Assembly (NCBI GenBank): GCA_000708835.1
Contig: DF237004.1
Location: 131,480-195,479, forward strand
DNA length: 64,000 bases
From: Klebsormidium nitens
Lineage: Eukaryota; Plantae; Klebsormidiophyceae
Direction: 5' to 3'
The position numbers were made by a program, and so were the translations under genes. The notes below the pieces were generated by a model. The model saw nothing but the letters and a program-made list of their open reading frames with translations, ran no database searches and was not told the origin of the DNA. Positions 9,501 to 26,800 of this stretch are shown here, piece by piece (position 1 is the first letter of the stretch; each line of letters begins with the position of its first letter).

Positions 9501-12500
9501 TCTTACGGGTACTAGATCCTTATAGGTATTGAACTTGATGGGTGTTGCGACGCCAAGGATATGGGCCCATCTAAGCACAAAAAAGCTTACACCGATGAGG
9601 ACTGCTGGTGCTGAAATTGCCAGGGGATTCTTGAAGTCTGTTCGACCCACGGGATGCATTGCCATTAAACACAGGCGGCAAAAGGCCGGTCCTGAAAGGT
9701 CGTGGCAAAAGACGACACGTTTCCACCGCGAGCGCCTTCTTACGCTTCGATTGATATGTTGTACAGTCCTCAGCTCTGAGTACAGAAGATGAGGGCCGGG
9801 AGCCTTGCGAAGTGATCTCTCTTGACGTGTCGCCGTGCGGGATGACCGGCAGGAAACGGGCTATCCAGGTTTATCACAAAACTCGCAAACTTTTCCTTCA
9901 AAGCACAAAAAGTCAAGCGTTGACAGCAATTCACGTTCTAGAAGTACGAGCTTAGATACCAGGTGGCATCGAAGGCTAGTTTTCCACGATTTAGCACGAT
10001 TTAGCACCAAATTAGAACAAATGCTACCGGCTGAGAGCTAACCCCTCTGCGGGTTATCTCCTTGGTTCCAGGAGCGCAAGCTGGAGCGGCAGCGGCAGGA
10101 GGAGCGTCCAGCCGTGCCCGACACGATCGAGCTTGAACGGAAACGATAACCCCAGCGGTTCAACCCAACAATAGCAAACTTTGAGCTCAAGCGTCACGGG
10201 TGAATCGCTAACCCCCTAACGGTTATTTTTCAGGAGCGCGAGCTGGAGCGTCAGCGGCAGGAAGAGGTCCTCGCGCTGGAACGCCAGGCCGTGCTGGACG
10301 CGATCGAGCGCAACAAGGCGGAGGAGCTGCGCCAGATGCAGGAGCGGCGCGACGCGGGCGCGCGGCTGCTGCAGGCAAGCCTGCGCGCGCGGACCGCAGA
10401 CTTGCTCCAATGGCACTGTCACAGCGGTCCGACGTGTAGTTTATGAAGTGCAATCAAGAGGGCGACCTGAACTTCAGTCTTAGCATCACATAAAGTGTTG
10501 GCTGCTAACCAGGCTGATTAAGAGACTATTCTCCTGTGTTATGAAGCAGATTCGATGCTAGCTTTGACATTGTGCCGCCCAAGTGTGTTTATTGGACGTT
10601 TCACCACTTCCTAACCACCCATCAAGAACTCAGAACCATTCATGTCAAGGGCGAAAAAATCAGAAGCAAACACGTGTCCAGACGTCTGTTATAACGGAGA
10701 GATCTGGACCGTCCAACCGTTATGCTTGACAAACTAGACGGTAGTGACAGCAAAGACTTCTGTCCCCAGCATACTGGCAACGTTCGCTTGAACCAACAGT
10801 CACTTGAAATAAGATCCAAGTCACCGGGAAAACAAACAAAAAAACCTAACCCAAAAGATGACGCGCTCCGCACCCGAACCCACCCTGACCACCAGCCAAC
10901 CCCATCCGTCTCCCGGGTGCCTATCTTAGTTCAAGCGCCTGATAGTTCAAAGAACGTTGCCAAACTGTCCCCAGCCAGCTCTCAACTCTGCGGTCCGCCT
11001 GCAGGAGGTGTCGCGCAGCAACGCGGCGCTGATTGAGCGCAAGAAGGCGCTCGCGGCCGCGGAGCGCGAGGAGGAGCTGCGCATCGCGGCGTACATCGCG
11101 CAGAAAGAAGCGCGCGAGGCGCAGGTCGCGGAGGAGCAGGAGCGGGTCAAGAAGGACCGGGAGCGCGAGGTGGCCAGGCTGCGCGGGATGCAGGTGCGCG
11201 CGTTTTAAAAAACATTGAGGAGATGGGCTGGTCGTCTGTTTTGTGGCTCTCTCAGAGCCCCTCAGAATCGACGAGAGGAAGACCGCTGATTGAACTCACA
11301 GAGCTTCAAAACAGGCAATCAGATAGAGGTTAGATGCATCCTGCAAGTGATCTTTGGGGGATCAGAGTCGAAGAAAGGATTGTTGTGGAGAAGATTGCAC
11401 TCGTACAGCGCCGGAGTAATATGAGCAGTCATCGTCCGGGGCAACCCAAGTACGCCGTCCTTAAGGAGCCAAGGAAAAGTCTTTCCAACATTTGGCTTCA
11501 CAACCTTTCTGCAGGAGAAGGCCAACGACAAGCAGGCCGAGATCGACGCGCTGCGCGCGCAGCGCACGCAGGAGGCGTACGAGCGCGAGTGGCGCGCGAA
11601 GGAGCGCGCCGAGGCGGAGCGCGCGCGGCGGCTGAACCAGGAGCTCGCGGAGGCGCGCGAGCAGCAGAAGGTCCTCAAGATGAAGCAGCTGGCGGACTAC
11701 GCGCAGGCAGAGCAAGCCGAGTTCTACAGGATCATAGCCGAAAAAAGAGGTGGGGACGATAATCTTCTCTGGTCTCTCGAGGGTACCCGGCATTTTCATA
11801 GTGCCTGATTGTCATGACGCTTACAAGCAGAGATTGAGTAACTGCGAGCGTCGTGTGGAATGTGATTGGTCTGGATACTGCTTCAGATCAGCTGAAGTGA
11901 CTCCCGTTTCTTTTAGGCGCGTTGGCAGTCGAATCGAGAACTCTTCGCGCCCATAAGACGAGACTTTCCGACCTGCGGGGTGGTGAAACACAAACGCGAA
12001 AGGATTCTTATCAGATCCGTCTACTTCCTCTCCCCTGATTCGAGAATCAAAGCGACAAGTTTTAAGGGCTGTGTCGCTCTAAATTTCACGTCTAGGCGAA
12101 CCGTTTCCATCGACCATTGTACAATCGCCTATCCACCTTTGGACTGACCACACACTTTACCTTTCCATCGCCCCTCCATAATCAATCCCTTCTTGTCAAT
12201 TCTCCGTATAACCTCCTGCTCGCGTGCAGAGATGGAGAAGCGCGAGCGCGAGCTGGAGCAGCAGGCGCAGCGCAAGGAGGTGGAGCACAAGGAACAGCTG
12301 AAGCTGCAGATCGCGCAGCGGGAGGAGGAGCGGCGGAGGGAGCGGGAGGCGCACCTCAGAGAGGGGGATAAGATCAAGCAGAAACTGCAGGCGGAGAAGG
12401 ATAAGCTGGAGAGGATACGGATGAAAAAGCTGCAGGATCTGGAGAAGGAGGGCGTGCCGGAGAAGTATAGGGCGGAGCTCATGACGAAGAAGCTCATGAA

Positions 12501-12504
12501 GTGA
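6558..12504 (+). CDS. CFAP45: Cilia- and flagella-associated protein 45 (FAP45/CCDC19), 11 exons: 6558-6641, 6919-7014, 7368-7454, 7654-7767, 8040-8110, 8488-8605, 9073-9228, 10234-10374, 11005-11193, 11515-11749, 12230-12504; 521 aa
   Basis: Exons join in phase (1566 nt). Recognisable FAP45 motifs: YKV/ISRSSTVDESLFG, VLLTKGDIQRIK, EVKRMNQMMLYSKCMTVRDKQIEEK, VARLRGMQEKANDKQAEIDALRAQR.QEA.EREWR.KER, C-terminal LEKEGVPEKYRAEL. Intron 8 needs a GC donor (CAG|GCAAGC at 10375). Confidence 0.95.
9341..9561. mobile_element. Small element in CFAP45 intron 7: 27-bp inverted arms (9354-9380 / 9513-9539) around a G-rich core, flanked by ~16-bp direct repeats (9341-9356 / 9547-9561)
   Basis: ATAAAGTTTAACACCTATAAGGATCTA versus the reverse complement of TAGATCCTTATAGGTATTGAACTTGAT match at 24/27. 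Direct repeat GCGACGCACAAGGATA / GCGACGC-CAAGGATA. The core recurs inverted at ~10845-10930. Confidence 0.6.
10037..10149 (+). repeat. Degenerate duplicate of CFAP45 branch point, acceptor and exon 8 start, ending in an in-frame stop
   Basis: GCTAACCCC..GGTTAT..CAG|GAGCGCAAGCTGGAGCGGCAGCGGCAGGAGGAG matches the real GCTAACCCC..GGTTAT..CAG|GAGCGCGAGCTGGAGCGTCAGCGGCAGGAAGAG at 10207-10266. It reads ERKLERQRQEERPAVPDTIELERKR*. Confidence 0.85.
10845..10930 (-). repeat. Second, inverted copy of the G-rich core repeat, in CFAP45 intron 8
   Basis: The reverse complement GGGTTGGCTGGTGGTCAGGGTGGGTTCGGGTGCGGAGCGCGTCATCTTTTGGGTTAGGTTT aligns to 9411-9473 GGGTTGGTATGGTGGTTAGGGTGGGTTCGGGTGCCAAGCGCGTCATGTTTGTTGGTTAGGTTT at roughly 80-85% by eye. 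Confidence 0.8.
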
Positions 12505-13758: not shown

Positions 13759-14384
13759 TTACCAACCCGTCTTCAGCTTTGGATATAATTGCAGATTTCC
13801 GTCACTGGTTATCAGCCTGAAATCGTATCTCATGGCTTGCTCCGCAATTGCCGCATCGAAATAATCGGTTGCGGCCTTGCCAGGCAAAGCCTTCGATGCC
13901 CTCAAGGTGGTAAACCCAATGACGTCATCTGCCGTGACCTCATCAAAGATGGCCACGTTCCCCGTCTTCTCCAGGAAATCTAGCATAGCAACCCCCTCCA
14001 GAACCTTCCTCCCCCTGTCCATTACTACGATTCGACCTGAGCGATAAGAAGTCGACCTCAAAAACGACCGGCAACGACACGTATACATTCGTGAGTTGTT
14101 CAAGGAACAGCCTCGTTTCTTTTGACATCTGATTGCTAAGACTTTCCGGTGGTTTTTGCGAATCTGCCTTGGGCTCAATTTCAACCGTTGCAAAAACAAA
14201 TCTGCACATGAGTCAGGCAAAAGTTGATCAGGCAAAAGTTGATCAAAGTCACCACAAAGTGGGCATTGAAGTTTTAGGAGTTTGAGGGCAGCAACCGAGG
14301 CCACGAAAGACAGAGGACACCTTTACGAATTGATCATCGAACGATGTCCCACATTAACAAGCGCAACTCAAAAAAGGCTCTCAT
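13759..14384 (-). pseudogene. VapC-like PIN-domain ribonuclease (COG3744-type), frameshifted, with a probable intron at 14320-14129
   Basis: The C-terminal frame ends AATDYFDAAIAEQAMRYDFRLITSDGNLQLYPKLKTGW*, like DPFDRLLIAQA..EGL.LVT.D..F..Y....LW. A second frame gives MSKETRLFLEQLTNVYVSLPVVFEVDFL, joined by a shift at ~14044 to RSGRI. An upstream ATG at 14384 reads MRAFFELRLLMWDI, in register with MRLLLDTHALLWWL. Confidence 0.7.
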
Positions 14385-15772
14385 AAACAACCGCAACGTG
14401 ATGTGCTGCATGCGACCAGCTAATGTAGTCCGAGTCGAACAAGCAAGTCGAAGCACGCTGCTCGGAGAGCCTTCTGATCGCTAGGCTCAAGTTGGGTGGG
14501 GAGCTAGAGACCAATCCAGAGCAGACAAGTTACCTGTGAACTAAAACAACAAGACCTTTCACATCCAGCGGCTTCACATATCGATTTCAAGCCCATCTTC
14601 TTCTCATGAAGTGGGGCAAAACGAAGGACCAAGAACACAGAACGACCAAGAACAACCGTCTTACCTTAAGACTGCATTCGTGTCTAACATTACGCGACTA
14701 CTCTGGGGCTCCTTCCACAGGTCCGGCCCGCTCAAATGATTGGTTGCTGCATTGGGGGTTTCCGTCGCCGCTCGTATTCTCCCCGCCGACCTCCTCGTTC
14801 GTGGACTCCACACACCGACGTCCCGAGCTCCAATACTCGTTGCCCGGGACGTTGGCCACCCGAGATCGAATTGCGTGTAAGCTCAGCGAGAAAGGATTGA
14901 ATGCAATTCAGCACGGCTTAGCAGGTGCAGGTAGCACGTGGGAGGTGGCATGTGCCCCGAGCATATTGAAAGCTCGTTTTACATGAAATCGAAGCCTTTT
15001 TTGAGTAAGATTCTTTCCAGACTCTCACTTCTCATTTACCCATAGAAGGGCAGCAAAGACGACTGATATAGAGACAAACTCCTAAATTCTCAAAAGTCGA
15101 ATAGAATTTCCAGAAACTGCGCATCTGACCGAGAGCCAAAGTTAGGCGGGCGATGGTTAAAGTCGGTTCAAGCGCTTTCTCTCAATGACCTTCCTAGTAA
15201 TTGATAAATTGAGAGATCAGAGCAATTCCAACAAGGGGGAGCAGCATCGAGGATGCGATTAAACAGGTGTAAGGCCACACGATGCAGTCTTGCATGATAC
15301 CCTGCCAAAAGACTCTTGGCGATAACTGGAGAGAAGCGTTTCTGAGGAGTATGTGACGGCAGCGGAGAAGCAAAAAGACGGCAACGGAGAAGCAAGAAGA
15401 ACTCAACTCTGCAGAGGGAAGACTCGAAACGAGACATCTTCAAGGTAGACAGCGCATGTGAGTCAGCCGTTGTTTGAAAGATTGGCAGCTCCAAAGAGGT
15501 TGCTTTACAAAAAATTTGAGAAAGGTGTTGTACTGTTTCTGGACTGGAGTTGAGGCACACTACGAATGTTCTGAAGAGATGAAAGGGACTCAAAGCCTGG
15601 TGGACATAAAAGCAAGATTATGAAGATGGAACCGCAAACACTTACATAAGACCGCCGTACAACATTCAAATATTCTGCACCTTGCTGGAGGTTCTCCTAT
15701 TCGGGGTTGCTTCTGTTATTGTGCCCAAAATGGACACAAACGATGATGAGAAACGTCTAGAAGGCGACTTAC

Positions 15773-16572
15773 ATAGCCCACATGCTGCCGCCGGTAGATG
15801 GGGCGGCCGTCCTCGTTGAACCCAATTGGCTTGGCGGCGAGCTGGTCCTCGCGAAGACGCCTTTCGATCCTCTCAGCGGCTACAACAGCAAGAGAAAGTG
15901 CATCAACAATCTGCGAGAGTTGCACCGCAAAGTGGCTGATCACTGTGACCATGGAGATCTACACCACATAACGTAAGGTAACGAGGTGCTGAGTATGAAA
16001 AGGTTCTCTTCTTTAATTTTCGAGCCTAACTTGCTGCTGACAGCACGTGCAAACCCACGTGCAAACCCACAAGCATAGCGCCAGAAGTCCACGCTCAAGC
16101 ATAAAATTTGAGGCTATCTACGAAACATACACGTTTCTTGTAGCAGTAAACGAAGACAACCGCATGCCTAAATTGACTTTGAAGCACAAGCCCACCTCGT
16201 TCTTGCCGCGACTTGTACATGTTGCCGTCATTGCCTCCGGGCACCGCTGAAAAGCAGAAGCCAGAGTATTACATTGAATCTTTTGTTTCGCAGCAGGCAT
16301 TCGCAACCCAGAGAAAGAAAAGATACTCATACAAACAAGTAAGGCGGGCAAAGATCAAGTGCAGCGGACAATCTCAACCTCATACATTTGATGCATAGGT
16401 GAGAGAGAGCCTTGAAATACTTTGTGGTGCTTGACTGGAGGATAAAGATTGTGAAGCGTCACATAAACCGTCAGATTCCACCAATTCAATGGCCCTGCTT
16501 TGAGATGCCTCGAGCTTGGTTTCTCACCATTTGCTGTACTGCCGCCATCATGCCGGACACCGATGTGACGAG
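15773..16572 (-). CDS. Partial spliced gene of unknown function (three internal exons 16572-16528, 16246-16196, 15910-15773); ends unresolved
   Basis: Each exon has a CAG acceptor and a GT donor and a length divisible by 3. Joined: LVTSVSGMMAAVQQM|RCPEAMTATCTSRGKNE|IVDALSLAVVAAERIERRLREDQLAAKPIGFNEDGRPIYRRQHVGY. Further exon-like pieces lie up to ~17300. Confidence 0.45.
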
Positions 16573-20800: not shown

Positions 20801-23800
20801 AAAGCCCATCTCTGTGACACTTCTAATCTCCAAGACTCAAACTCACTTTCAAATCTGTCTTCTGCAGATGTTCGTTCACGTAATGGACGTATACGTCATC
20901 CCCGGTTTGGTCCTCCTGCTGGCCCAGAGGGAACCCCCTGCCAACCGTGCTGCGGCTGAAGCGATCCTCCACAGCGTGCGGGCGCGCGCGTGCGCACTGG
21001 GCTGCGCGCTCTCTGCGGTGTTTTCCTACCTGGACGTTGGGGGCGGTTCTGGTGAGGCGTCGAATGTTCCCCTTCCTACTTTATTGTTCTTATGTGATTG
21101 GTCGTTGAGCCATCGCGTTACTTGAATTCTTCAAGTTCTTAGCAATCAGAATCTTGCATTAGCAGGATTGCCATGTCTTTGTTACCTTTGAGGTTCCTCC
21201 TTGCGTCCCTTTGCTAGTTTCCGGGCTTACTCTCTGTACCATTGTTAGCAACTCACTTCGTGTCACAGTACTTTTGGTACATTTGCGGCACTACAGCGGC
21301 TGGTTAAAAGCTCCTCAGAACACTTTACCTGGGCTCTAAATTCTGGCGACTGTCGGCTTGTGAAGCCTCACGAAAGGGCTGCGTTTATTTATCGATTCGG
21401 TCCGACCGTCCGAGCGTCCAATATTGACGGCTGCGACCGACTTGCAAATGAGATCGACGGCCACGGCGGTTTGCACTGTCGAATTTTCAGCGGTGCCCAC
21501 AAGCACCGCCGAAATGTCACCCTTATATATTGGATTACCAGAGGCCGGAACATCCGAGTTGATAAATTTCTAGAATTTCTTATTGCCGTGAAAGACCGGC
21601 ACCAAATCCAATCCCCAAAATCCAACAAATCAACAACAAATCCACAAAAACAAACAATCAAAATAATCAACAACAAATCCAAACTCCCTGCGGGGAAAGA
21701 AAAAAAAAAAAAAAAACCAACAAATCCAAACTTCACAGAAACAAAACCCCACAAAAACCACAAAATCAACACTCACAAATTTAAGAATTTCTCGAGCATC
21801 TTTAACCTTGAAAGTAAAAGCCCTACTCCGAATACAGAAGCACGTCTCAACAGAAAACAAATTGTATTAATGTGAAAGAAATCAGTAGAATGGATGCTGA
21901 TTACATGGCCAGCTCAACATACTCGACGTATCATTGCTAAGTGTGGCCTCAATATCGAGATTTCTTGTAGTTACATTCGAAGCACAAGTGAAAGTATTGC
22001 AGAATAGCAGGAGAAATAACACTTTGTAACACCCACAAGAGATTAGGTTGACGAGCGCACCCATTGACAAGTACGTTAAACCCATAGGCACCCAACCAAC
22101 TTAACCTTTTCAAACCTCAAATTGCCATACCAGCAACACCGGACCCTCCCTTCATGCTTCAAGGTATATCTGTTCTTGAAGTTTCTGTCACCTACACATA
22201 CATTGCTCTTTTTAAACCATCATCTCTGAAGCCACGCGCAATTGTTGAGCATATGGTCTTATTTCTCAATTGTCCTCATCGTTTGCAGCCGCGTTTAGCT
22301 CGTGGGCACAACCAGGCCTCAAGCCCCACTCAGGGCTCTTTCCCCTCTTCGCCGCTCTCCTAGTCGAACGATTCCCGGGCTCAGTACTTGCACGGGGAGT
22401 CTTTTCCGATGCAAAACCTGCTGACGGTCTATCCAGATCGCTGGAATGGGCAACCGGGGGATCTGCCACCGCTCTAGTTGCCACAGTCTTGCAAGCTATT
22501 TGGTGAGATGTGTCTGATGGTTTTAACCTAGTTTTAACCTCGCTAAAATTTGCTAAGGACCGTTCTGTTCTTCTTATGGCGAACTGTTGTTCTGTATTTG
22601 CTGTTTAATCGGAGGCTGTGATCCTTCGAAAAGGGCCCTTGAAGTGGACGACGTGTCTGTGTATGGGAGAACTCACAAACAGCATTAAGCATGTGGCGGT
22701 GAAAGCGGAGTTGCTCGAGAAGTTTAGCAGCCTCTTTTAGAGCCTGGCCAGTGCTTTTCATGTTTACAATGTTTACAGTGCCCAGCTCAGAAAGGCATGG
22801 CCCGGAAAGACTCACCCACTTCTTTGTTGCTCATCGTTGTTTTGTAGCCCTTCACTGATAATTGTGCGCTTCGAGCGAGAATAACTGCCAGATCTCGAAC
22901 GTGTTTGTGCCCTCTCGACTTCGATTGACTTCTCTCTCCGTTTCAACGCCATAATCTTCTTCCGTGTTGCGTTGATCTTCATCGTTCCAATCCTCATCGC
23001 TTCTGTAGGACCTGAGCTCTGTCGAGAACCTTCTGGAATCTCACTGAAACCCTTGCCTTGTCCGTCTCGCAGCCGAGAACACTCCCACGATTTTTCGGGC
23101 CGCCTCGCTTTGAGCAACACGCAACCACTGCTCGTATTCTCCCAGGTATGTGGTGGTCGAGTTTCTATCTTGCGAAGTTCATATCCTGTCTAGTCGCAGT
23201 CCGCGTCCCATTTCGTTCTTAATCCGGATCTTAAGGGAGTGGGCCACACTGCGTGAATTCTATGTCCTTTGAGTGCGCTTGGGGGTTCGCTCATCAATAG
23301 TTCGCCGCTCAGTGGCCCCGCTGAATCCTGCTTCAGATAAAAGCCAACGTCGATTTACCATGGCCGTTCATCAGCCCAGTTCAGAGAAAACCGCTTTTGG
23401 GGGTCTCGTGTTATTCACTTCTATACTGATGACAAGGCATTTCATAATCACAGGGTTTCGAACCAACCCATGAGACCTGTATGCCGAAAACAGGACAGCA
23501 GGCCCGAGTTGTTTGTCTTTCCAACTCTCCCTGTCGGACTGGGCACCCGAGTACATCTGTTACACNNNNNNNNNNNNNNNNNNNNNNNNNNNNNNNNNNN
23601 NNNNNNNNNNNNNNNNNNNNNNNNNNNNNNNNNNNNNNNNNNNNNNNNNNNNNNNNNNNNNNNNNNNNNNNNNNNNNNNNNNNNNNNNNNNNNNNNNNNN
23701 NNNNNNNNNNNNNNNNNNNNNNNNNNNNNNNNNNNNNNNNNNNNNNNNNNNNNNNNNNNNNNNNNNNNNNNNNNNNNNNNNNNNNNNNNNNNNNNNNNNN

Positions 23801-26800
23801 NNNNNNNNNNNNNNNNNNNNNNNNNNNNNNNNNNNNNNNNNNNNNNNNNNNNNNNNNNNNNNNNNNNNNNNNNNNNNNNNNNNNNNNNNNNNNNNNNNNN
23901 NNNNNNNNNNNNNNNNNNNNNNNNNNNNNNNNNNNNNNNNNNNNNNNNNNNNNNNNNNNNNNNNNNNNNNNNNNNNNNNNNNNNNNNNNNNNNNNNNNNN
24001 NNNNNNNNNNNNNNNNNNNNNNNNNNNNNNTTGTTTTCTTTCGTTCTTGCTCACCCACTTTCCGTGACACCCTGCACTCATTGCCCAATGGAAGATTCTT
24101 CAAAAAATCAACGGAAGGTTTGGGGCTCCTGTTCATCTCATCCGCAGCTTCGCATAACGTATCCGTCACTTTTGGTGCAGTTGTTCAAACAAAAGGCGGA
24201 CGCCGTACTCGGGGCGGCTGGCTGGCCCGGTACTTGCCCCGGAGTCCGGTCAAGCAGCGGCGGACCGGATGGCAGCGGAACAGCCGGAACGGAAGACGGT
24301 TTGAGCAACGAACTTCTTCCCATGGCGGCACACATAAGGGTAAGGTCTTGCGCTCGGCCGAACAGCTGGTGTTAATCAGGGCCTAAGCTGAACATTCTAT
24401 CGACCTTTGCTCACAACGAGTACACGTTTCTCAGAGGCTCATGGACGGAATCTGTACCGAACTGTGTTGTGTGGAGGGATGCGGAACAACAGGGAGGAGC
24501 CTACCATCCAGTCTCTATTGCGTCAGAACATGAGCAAATTTTCGGCGGACACTCTTCCTTGCACTTTTGAGGAGCTCAGGGCTTGTTTCTCTATTTTTTG
24601 CAGGTATGGTCCGATGAGACTCAAAGCTTCAAGACAGCGTCCCTGCCGGTACGTCACCAATGCGTCACTCCACGTTATTTTCTTCGAACGTGGGACCCTA
24701 GCGTATGCGAGTTTGGATTGCCGCAATTTGAACCAGGGTTAGCTGGGGTTTGCAGGGGATCAGATTTGTGTAGGAGGCGAAGTCGCAGGTTTGCCACTTC
24801 TGGGTTGCACTCCGTTGCTTAAAAGAGGCTAGTCTTGAGTGATCCACGTGGCTGTCACGGCGCCCTTGAACCTGCAACACCAGCTTTAGATTCGCCGCGA
24901 GATTTTTGCACGTGCAGATCGGGGCGACGAGCCGCTTCATGATATATGCTTCTTGGTCGCTTGACGCGAGCGAGCCGGCCAGGCTTTCTTTAGCCACACC
25001 ACGATCATTGCTCCGTTCACTTTTTTTGTCCTTTCAATGCCACTCGGCATTTGCAAATGACGTCGTCAATGAAACTGGACCCTTGATATTGACGTCGTCA
25101 CTGCTTCTAGAGTGACCTGTCAGCCGTTTTTTGCTTGGGTCGCCCTTCGAAAGACCCGCAAATAACTAAGCTGCTAGTATTCGACGTCGCTGCAGGGCCT
25201 CTGCGTACACGAGAGCGCGTTTCTGCTCCGGACGCAGGAAGCGGTCCGTATGTCCGTTCTGGCGTCCGATTCCAGCCCGCGAAAGTCGAAAGACACCCAC
25301 GATTCACTTGGAAAAGTCAGAGGCTTCGACATGCTCCATAAGCTTACAGGTGGGACCTCGCGCTGCCTCATTCTTTTTCCATCCGCACCTTTTGCTTCTT
25401 CTCTTTCCTTCTCCGTGCAATTCTTGCTGCCGCTTCCTCGAAGCCTATCCCTATTGGTTTCCATCCTCCGCAAAGACGAGCAGCCGGGCTTCTTGCTTGA
25501 GTGTCTCCGTTTCTTGTCTGCTGCCTGCGGGATTGAAAGCCGCCGTGTCTGAGTTGTGTGCGGCATCTGCAACAGCTTTTTCTGGAAGCTTTTCTCAACG
25601 TTTCCGTTCTTTCCGTTGTCCCGTCCGGCGACTGGTCCGAGCCCCGGGCTAGCAGACTGTGTGCGCAATTTGAGGACGTTTCGAAACTCCCAAGTTTCTA
25701 TCTCTCCTCAAACGGCAACTCAGATATTCTTCCAAGATTATTTTACGATCATTCGCTTGCGACACGTGCTTTGTAGGAATCGAATGATTGCTCGGTCGTT
25801 CATACGTCTGTCTTCGTTTTCTGCAGGTTCACTTCCCCTGCTTGGCTCGCGGCTCCGTGTTGCGGGCGTTTGCGACCTACTTCATGCACCGGGCTTGCTC
25901 GGTTGACGACTCGGTTCCTTCTACCGGGGGCCCCGTTGTTCCATTAGACTTTCTCGTAGGTATGAATCGGGGAGGATTGGCCCCTCATAGGCACTGGAAT
26001 CTTACAGACCCTCGCGCACCATTCGCGTCGCTGGTAAGGGACACCGCAATTGGGAGAAAGAAAGGTGAGAAGTGCAGTAGTTTAGATGTGGTAGAGGAAG
26101 AAGATAGGCATGAGCATCCGGATGTTTTAGGCATGGCTCTCAACTTTTTTGGGGTTGCGAAGATGCTAAGAAAGGATTCGCGGATCCTTGGGACAGGTTT
26201 TGAGCGGCCGAGGGGAAGACATAGCAGGCGCAGCTCGGAAAACGAGCCCGCTCTAGAGCTCTTGCTGGGTGTAGATCGGACGAGTAGGCCGAACTCTAGA
26301 AGGACGTCACGCGCGGATCGTTAGATGAGTTATAGCAGCCGCTGATGGATTGCCGCATTAGCGTCCATCCTCCGGTATAAGTGCTGCACAGAGTCGTCAA
26401 AACGTAAAGAACCATTTCACCGCGTCAATTGGTTTTCGATACCAGAATAGATGGAGGTGCACACTGCAGGACTGATAGACAAGACCGCTTTTTTGTTTGC
26501 GAGCGCAGCCACAAGGAATGTTACTGCAGGAGATATGCGAGGAATCCGGTCTAAGAAACAGGCCGGACTTGATACTCAAGCTAGCTAGTGCCGGGACTTT
26601 GGTCTGATTGTACAAAACATTTATGTTCACACCGTGAAAATCAAGCGGATCGTTTGATTGCCGGCGACTTTGTGGGATTCCGTTCGCGCGCGCTGCCTTG
26701 ATCATTGAGTTGATGTACATACTACAGTCCCGTCGACCTCAGGCTGCTTGCTTGAAGCTTCAGTTCGACTGCTTTTGTTTCCAGAACATTTTTGGACATG

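Follow-up and report, generated by a model that had tools for sequence, protein, structure and literature searches.

Stand-alone VapC-like PIN domains are overwhelmingly encoded by prokaryotic toxin genes. The PIN proteins of eukaryotes, such as SMG6, NOB1, Utp24/Fcf1, Swt1 and the N-terminal PIN domain of Dis3, are larger, multi-domain and universally conserved. The locus described here lies in a 64,000-nucleotide stretch of the Klebsormidium nitens genome (assembly GCA_000708835.1, contig DF237004.1, positions 131,480 to 195,479 of the forward strand), referred to below as the window. It is probably a spliced nuclear gene from a very small and highly divergent family of VapC-like PIN endoribonucleases, with a reading frame that is broken once and with no antitoxin.

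The family is known from four sequences in 15 billion, none of them labelled with a taxon and all with sub-threshold Pfam scores. With the 94-residue C-terminal piece of the window protein (14043-13762) as query, HMMER found three relatives among 1.84 billion cluster representatives, P0001 (E 3.5e-17), P0002, encoded on a 62.5-kb contig (E 8.6e-17), and P0003 (E 7.8e-14), the remaining matches being weak and to long repetitive proteins. P0009, a 233-residue JGI protein from a 1,068-nt contig, falls in the 90% cluster of P0003; its label at JGI, 'predicted nucleic acid-binding protein', is one that genuine PF01850 proteins also receive. A word search with the family profile returned the same proteins and no others, and a word-index search with the C-terminal piece returned nothing. 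No protein from the locus itself appeared in the word searches, at lengths of about 52-408 residues, and the gene therefore seems to be unannotated. Scanning metagenome contigs for the encoding DNA gave no match, comparison of the 12.5-16.5 kb region with the window itself revealed no repeat copies, and a literature search found no description of a PIN or VapC gene from Klebsormidium. In all searches the exon pieces of the window were used as separate sequences, divided at the intron and at the break.

P0009 aligns with the window in three consecutive parts, each in its own frame: residues 18-83 with 14858-14664 (frame -3), residues 81-142 with 14209-14021 (frame -1) and residues 140-233 with 14043-13762 (frame -2) by tblastn. 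The window sequences ...AVLR and FVFATVEIEP... are 463 nt apart, whereas P0009 reads ...FDTSGLLR-FLFAAVEIDPP... without interruption. The minus strand from 14690 to 14659 reads ATG TTA GAC ACG AAT GCA GTC TTA AG, followed by GTAAGA, a consensus donor (AG|GTAAGA, GT at 14664-14663), and the corresponding acceptor is ...catgtgcAG|A (AG at 14203-14202). Joining AG to A restores an arginine codon equivalent to R83 of P0009. We conclude that the interval is a phase-2 spliceosomal intron, its splicing being predicted from the contiguity of one relative, P0009. In the model that we propose (Table 1), translation would begin at the ATG at 14690, exon 1 would run to 14665, the intron would occupy 14664-14202, and exon 2 would start at 14201 and end with the stop at 13761-13759.

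Table 1. Features proposed for the PIN-domain locus, in order of transcription, with positions in the window
Feature	Position	Strand	Sequence and basis
Possible further upstream exon	15775..15825	-	LGSTRTAAPSTGGSMWA; resembles P0009 residues 1-17
Leader, same frame as exon 1	14691..14858	-	Conserved with P0009 residues 18-75
Coding exon 1	14665..14690	-	ATG 14690-14688; MLDTNAVL, then AG, the first two bases of a split Arg codon
Predicted spliceosomal intron, 463 nt, phase 2	14202..14664	-	GT-AG; P0009 contiguous across the junction
Exon 2, part one	14045..14201	-	FVFATVEIEPKADSQKPPESLSNQMSKETRLFLEQLTNVYVSLPVVFEVDFL; 52 codons past the split Arg
Frame break, single base	14044..14044	-	Alignments of P0009 and the other relatives, tblastn
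Exon 2, part two	13759..14043	-	RSGRIVV...DYFDAAIAEQAMRYDFRLITSDGNLQLYPKLKTGW; 94 codons and the stop TAA 13761-13759

The predicted acidic residues of the active site are distributed over all three coding segments. The first catalytic Asp is encoded in exon 1 (codon 14684-14682, in MLDTN), where a BLASTP comparison of 14873-14664 with P0009 (E 8e-12) places LDTNAVLR opposite FDTSGLLR; since P0009 is contiguous over the junction, this first Asp is intact and has not become Glu. The first part of exon 2, 48-50% identical to P0009, carries the second acidic residue, the Glu of FEVD, and the second part, at 63% identity, carries the third, the Asp of FDAAIA, and the fourth, that of ITSD.

Some further features touch on introns. 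Beside the acceptor, on its intronic side, the window has a perfect 15-nt tandem duplication (14213-14242, TCAGGCAAAAGTTGA twice on the plus strand). P0002 has a Ser exactly at the site of the split Arg (AG+A) of the window, preceded by 16 unrelated residues, as would be expected of an ORF caller reading through an intron that ends in AG; this hints at an intron in the same position in the genome that encodes P0002. P0003 diverges from P0009, its 93%-identical cluster mate, past ...AIAEFA, a hint of another intron or of the end of the contig at that point.

The overlapping minus-strand frames reported in an initial annotation of the locus are real, ORF 13759-14304 terminating in ...DYFDAAIAEQAMRYDFRLITSDGNLQLYPKLKTGW and a stop and ORF 13943-14209 containing MSKETRLFLEQLTNVYVSLPVVFEVDFL, and so is the frame break that it had placed near 14044. 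The P0009 matches at 14209-14021 and 14043-13762 abut in different frames, with a joint E of 2e-41. The last homologous codon of the first frame is TTA at 14047-14045, and homology resumes in the next frame with CGC at 14043-14041, so that one base stands between them where the relatives have four residues (TRLK, SRVR, TRIS). Past the break the old frame continues for 33 codons to a stop at 13945-13943. The product predicted from the ATG therefore has 94 residues and lacks the C-terminal half of the domain; deprived by this truncation of its last two acidic residues, the protein encoded by the window copy should be inactive.

The C-terminal half is encoded in a frame that is itself open for 181 codons (13759-14304), of which 87 lie upstream of the break and run past the acceptor into the intron; an off-frame stretch that stays open in this way is unusual (a naive count of stops puts it at about 2%). 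Through an alternative acceptor at 14130-14129, exon 1 would be joined to this stretch in frame, but without the conserved Glu segment.

Is the gene truly broken in the living alga? The same spliced PIN gene might be intact there, with the break at 14044 due to an error of sequencing or assembly or private to the culture, and we judge this to be unlikely, though far from negligible. The conservation of the coding sequence speaks for it. The window copy keeps 14 of the 15 columns before the break that are invariant between P0009 and P0002, and 26 of the 27 family-invariant columns after it, and neither homologous frame contains a stop. Among themselves the relatives share 40-47% identity, and the window copy is nearer to each of them than that, at 63, 52 and 47%. 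The scaffold, moreover, includes a gap of 465 N at 23566-24030 of the window, which points to an assembly of draft quality; it is this gap that produces the spurious long 'ORFs' of both strands at 23411-24386. Against such an error, the break lies outside any homopolymer run, and the four extra residues of the relatives exceed what a one-base miscall could remove, unless the lineage already had a shorter loop. The near-complete retention of invariant positions implies that the break is recent or else an error of the draft assembly: it would have arisen very recently, or in the sequenced culture only, or else be an artefact of assembly. In the reading that we favour, in which the frame of a divergent PIN gene has been broken once, the break would be young, both of its flanks being as conserved as they are in the relatives.

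Conservation extends upstream of exon 1. The leader matches P0009 in a single frame with 43% identity (tblastn, E 2e-8 to 5e-8), is rich in Ser, Thr, Ala and Arg, and contains neither an ATG nor a stop. An in-frame stop lies upstream of it at 14885-14883, with no ATG between that stop and the ATG at 14690, and the leader is what remains of an N-terminal extension, or else a 5' UTR. P0009 has Ala-Phe at the position of the Met-Leu of the window; its PIN domain does not begin with a Met, and its frame is open for 74 codons upstream. The single-frame conservation of the leader suggests that the relatives have a coding N-terminal extension; the window copy would either start at MLDTN or be damaged likewise in its 5' part.

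Still further upstream, the segment listed in Table 1 as a possible exon is identical to the first residues of P0009 at 11 of 17 positions, a weak match (tblastn, E 0.05-0.25 for the whole window), and is followed by a GTAAGT donor with its GT at 15772-15771. When the sequence was read by eye, no canonical GT-AG splice was found that would take this segment to 14858 in frame. A 60-codon ATG ORF at 15952-15773 (minus strand) was considered as an antitoxin-like cistron or as the true N-terminus and was rejected, having no Pfam match, low recognition in the Atlas and no in-frame join. This ORF ends exactly at the GTAAGT donor, in phase 0, and overlaps the segment similar to P0009 residues 1-17, which is read in another frame; joined to an acceptor at 14883-14882, the ORF would end at a stop near 14734, about 44 nt short of the PIN ATG.

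A more elaborate history can be imagined, in which an ancestor of the Klebsormidium-type algae captured a VapC-derived PIN RNase that then gained the intron and, in the Ser/Thr/Ala/Arg-rich leader, a targeting sequence. The result would be a small, fast-evolving algal family, directed to an organelle and free of antitoxin, whose copy in the window has been freshly broken or mis-assembled. We regard this history as doubtful.

The assignment to the PIN superfamily, which we hold to be very likely, follows from several comparisons of sequences and profiles. PF01850 (PIN) is the top Pfam family for the C-terminal piece of the window (E 0.012, 16.6 bits, profile positions 55-117 of 120), and also for P0009 (E 2.5e-3, 18.9 bits), P0002 (E 8.6e-4, 20.3 bits) and P0001 (E 3.9e-4, 21.5 bits). 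All of these single-sequence matches (16.6-21.5 bits) score below the gathering score of 23.6 bits, yet they are colinear, and four members that are 40-63% identical all pick PF01850 from among 24,736 families. The VapC models of NCBIfam match at E 0.017-0.065, and the nearest clusters in the ESM Atlas are bacterial PIN/VapC (0.92-0.93).

Profile-profile alignment extends these matches over the whole domain. A family profile, in which the pieces of the window protein were entered as separate rows and the exon-1 piece, misplaced by MAFFT, was positioned through its pairwise alignment instead, was aligned by hhalign with a profile of 120 PIN proteins (118 from PF01850 and 2 from PF13470) and three VapC/PIN proteins from the Synechocystis plasmids pSYSA and pSYSX. 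The alignment scored 24 (P 0.007) over 127-128 columns, pairing P0009 residues 62-221 with VapC positions 5-138. After column shuffling, 0 of 200 alignments reached this score (mean 12.3, SD 2.3, maximum 21.9) and none covered more than 55 columns. The Asp of the family D-T-[SN] motif falls on the Asp of VapC LIDTN, the Glu of E-[LV]-D (FEVD in the window) on the Glu of the ...igEL motif, and the Asp of F-D-x-A-I-A on that of L-D-K-Q-I-A, while ITSD falls on VTRN, which places the fourth acidic residue at the TRN/SRD position. All four acidic residues (Asp, Glu, Asp, Asp) are present in the window in the canonical order. With single VapC proteins or narrow subfamily profiles, hhalign aligned the short D-x-x-IA...T-x-D segment only, with P of about 0.05-0.08.

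The protein might instead be lineage-specific, with some other or unknown fold and a fortuitous resemblance to PIN motifs. The sub-threshold scores with both Pfam and NCBIfam would be in keeping with this, as would several blank or insignificant comparisons: a family-profile search of PDB sequences found no match, single-sequence searches of the PDB gave insignificant matches only (the best to VapC11, E 0.79), and five cyanobacterial PIN proteins, compared pairwise, scored about zero bits. Structure prediction was uninformative, since the two AlphaFold2 models from six-row alignments were of low confidence (pLDDT 36 and 48); they showed alternating strands and helices, for which Foldseek gave no PIN match in the PDB. 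A chance resemblance is nevertheless improbable, given that four members choose a single family, that the Atlas neighbours are PIN proteins, and that the profile alignment is domain-wide, puts the acidic residues opposite one another and scores above every shuffle. Under the PIN reading, an intact member of the family would consist of about 160 residues forming one PIN domain, and its four acidic residues (Asp in LDTN, Glu in FEVD or LELD, Asp in FDAAIA and Asp in ITSD) would, by analogy with VapC, hold Mg2+ or Mn2+ and cut RNA.

The gene model first drawn for this locus differs from that in Table 1. The initial annotation had started the gene at an ATG at 14384, had placed an intron at 14320-14129 and had proposed a Glu in place of the first catalytic Asp as well as two shifts of frame; such a model now appears very improbable. 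Its N-terminal segment FFELRLLMWDI is loosely like the LLDTHALLWWL motif. The letters quoted for this start (MRAFFELRLLMWDI) are present in the window, in ORF 14334-14456, but they are intronic, and no relative aligns to 14456-14210. This segment lies between the consensus donor and acceptor and is bridged exactly by P0009, and a far better N-terminus, MLDTNAVLR, occurs upstream within the exon-1 match, with its Asp present. The second shift, placed near 14342, is likewise inside the intron, leaving one break and not two. The annotation was right that a spliceosomal intron exists and wrong as to its GT..AG limits. Exon 1 and the conserved leader had both been overlooked, and no sign is seen of the decay that was proposed for the gene, 26 of the 27 invariant positions after the break being kept.

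In other respects that annotation holds. Its identification of a PIN-type, VapC-like gene is borne out by the weak Pfam and NCBIfam matches in four members together with the significant full-length profile-profile match to VapC; when the pieces were compared with PIN profiles, as it had proposed for the repaired protein, PF01850 came top and hhalign gave a significant P value, though every Pfam match fell under the gathering score. The best matches do not fall to eukaryotic PIN families, a possibility that it had raised. The eukaryotic PIN models of Pfam (Fcf1, NOB1, Zc3h12a/NYN) gave no match at E up to 1, and the sole eukaryotic PIN match is of one relative, P0009, to PIN_4 at E 0.075. Its statement that no antitoxin ORF is evident nearby also agrees with our results. 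None of the upstream frames matches a family, and the in-frame stretch upstream is the leader conserved with P0009 and not a separate ORF. In the absence of an antitoxin partner, the locus is not a toxin-antitoxin module here.

The setting of the gene is eukaryotic in appearance. The window is without long ORFs or tRNA genes, and no Rfam family was found in it. A neighbouring gene on the plus strand (10722-12504), which converges on the PIN gene from 1.25 kb away, is GC-rich and encodes a coiled coil rich in Glu, Arg and Lys; its last exon (12193-12504) matches the Trichohyalin-plectin-homology (TPH) domain (PF13868, E 9e-10). This gene has the look of an ordinary eukaryotic one, of ciliary or flagellar type. 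Its GC3 is 0.85, compared with 0.48-0.61 for the PIN exons. Prokaryotic relatives were sought widely: no prokaryotic protein was found at E ≤ 1e-3 among the 1.84 billion representatives, 185,579 bacterial and archaeal species genomes and a set of viral contigs gave no match, and a tblastn search of plasmids gave no relative, its sole match being to an unrelated C40 peptidase. The lower GC3 of the PIN exons might suggest a bacterial vapC on a wrongly joined contig, a reading that can be dismissed, since the coding sequence is split by a 463-nt GT-AG intron, a eukaryotic TPH-domain gene adjoins it, there is no antitoxin, and neither the genomes, the plasmids, the viral contigs nor the bacterial proteins yield a match. 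A prokaryotic origin by horizontal transfer is plausible, as a reasonable guess from the type of domain.

What the locus contributes is in one sense modest: a gene model is corrected, with the Asp-to-Glu change and the second frameshift removed, and horizontal transfer is left unproven. If our interpretation is true, however, a spliced nuclear copy in which all of the catalytic residues are encoded would represent a nuclease of this kind without an antitoxin in a eukaryote, in a host lineage that is an early-diverging relative of the land plants. The family to which it belongs is nearly invisible to standard annotation.

How, then, does the family compare with known PIN systems? It resembles the VapC proteins of bacteria and archaea (FitB-type and other PF01850 type II toxins) in being a single domain of about 140-160 residues, in the order and spacing of Asp...Glu...Asp...Asp, in the full-length profile-profile alignment and in having PF01850 as its top family. 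The shapes of the motifs are also alike: xLDTN, a hydrophobic strand followed by E, D-x-x-IA-x-x-A and LxTxD. It differs from them in having no detectable pairwise similarity to any bacterial VapC and no upstream antitoxin gene, in the spliceosomal intron that splits a codon after the first strand, in some 18 extra residues after that strand, and in its conserved Ser/Thr/Ala/Arg-rich leader and nuclear eukaryotic setting. Among solved structures, the best match is that of P0001 to Mycobacterium tuberculosis VapC11 (PDB 6a7v), which at the E value given above is not significant and serves as a lead only; the D-x-x-I-x-x-L-A...D segment is in register between the two. The consensus of the COG3744-type VapC proteins shows a likeness by eye, in N-x-V-x-VS...E, a basic Gly loop, D-x-FD-x-x-IA-x-QA and L-x-T-x-D...Y, although its N-terminal match had been put on the wrong segment of the window. 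With the eukaryotic PIN proteins the family shares a eukaryotic host and membership of the PIN superfamily, and it contrasts with those large, universally conserved proteins in being tiny and single-domain.
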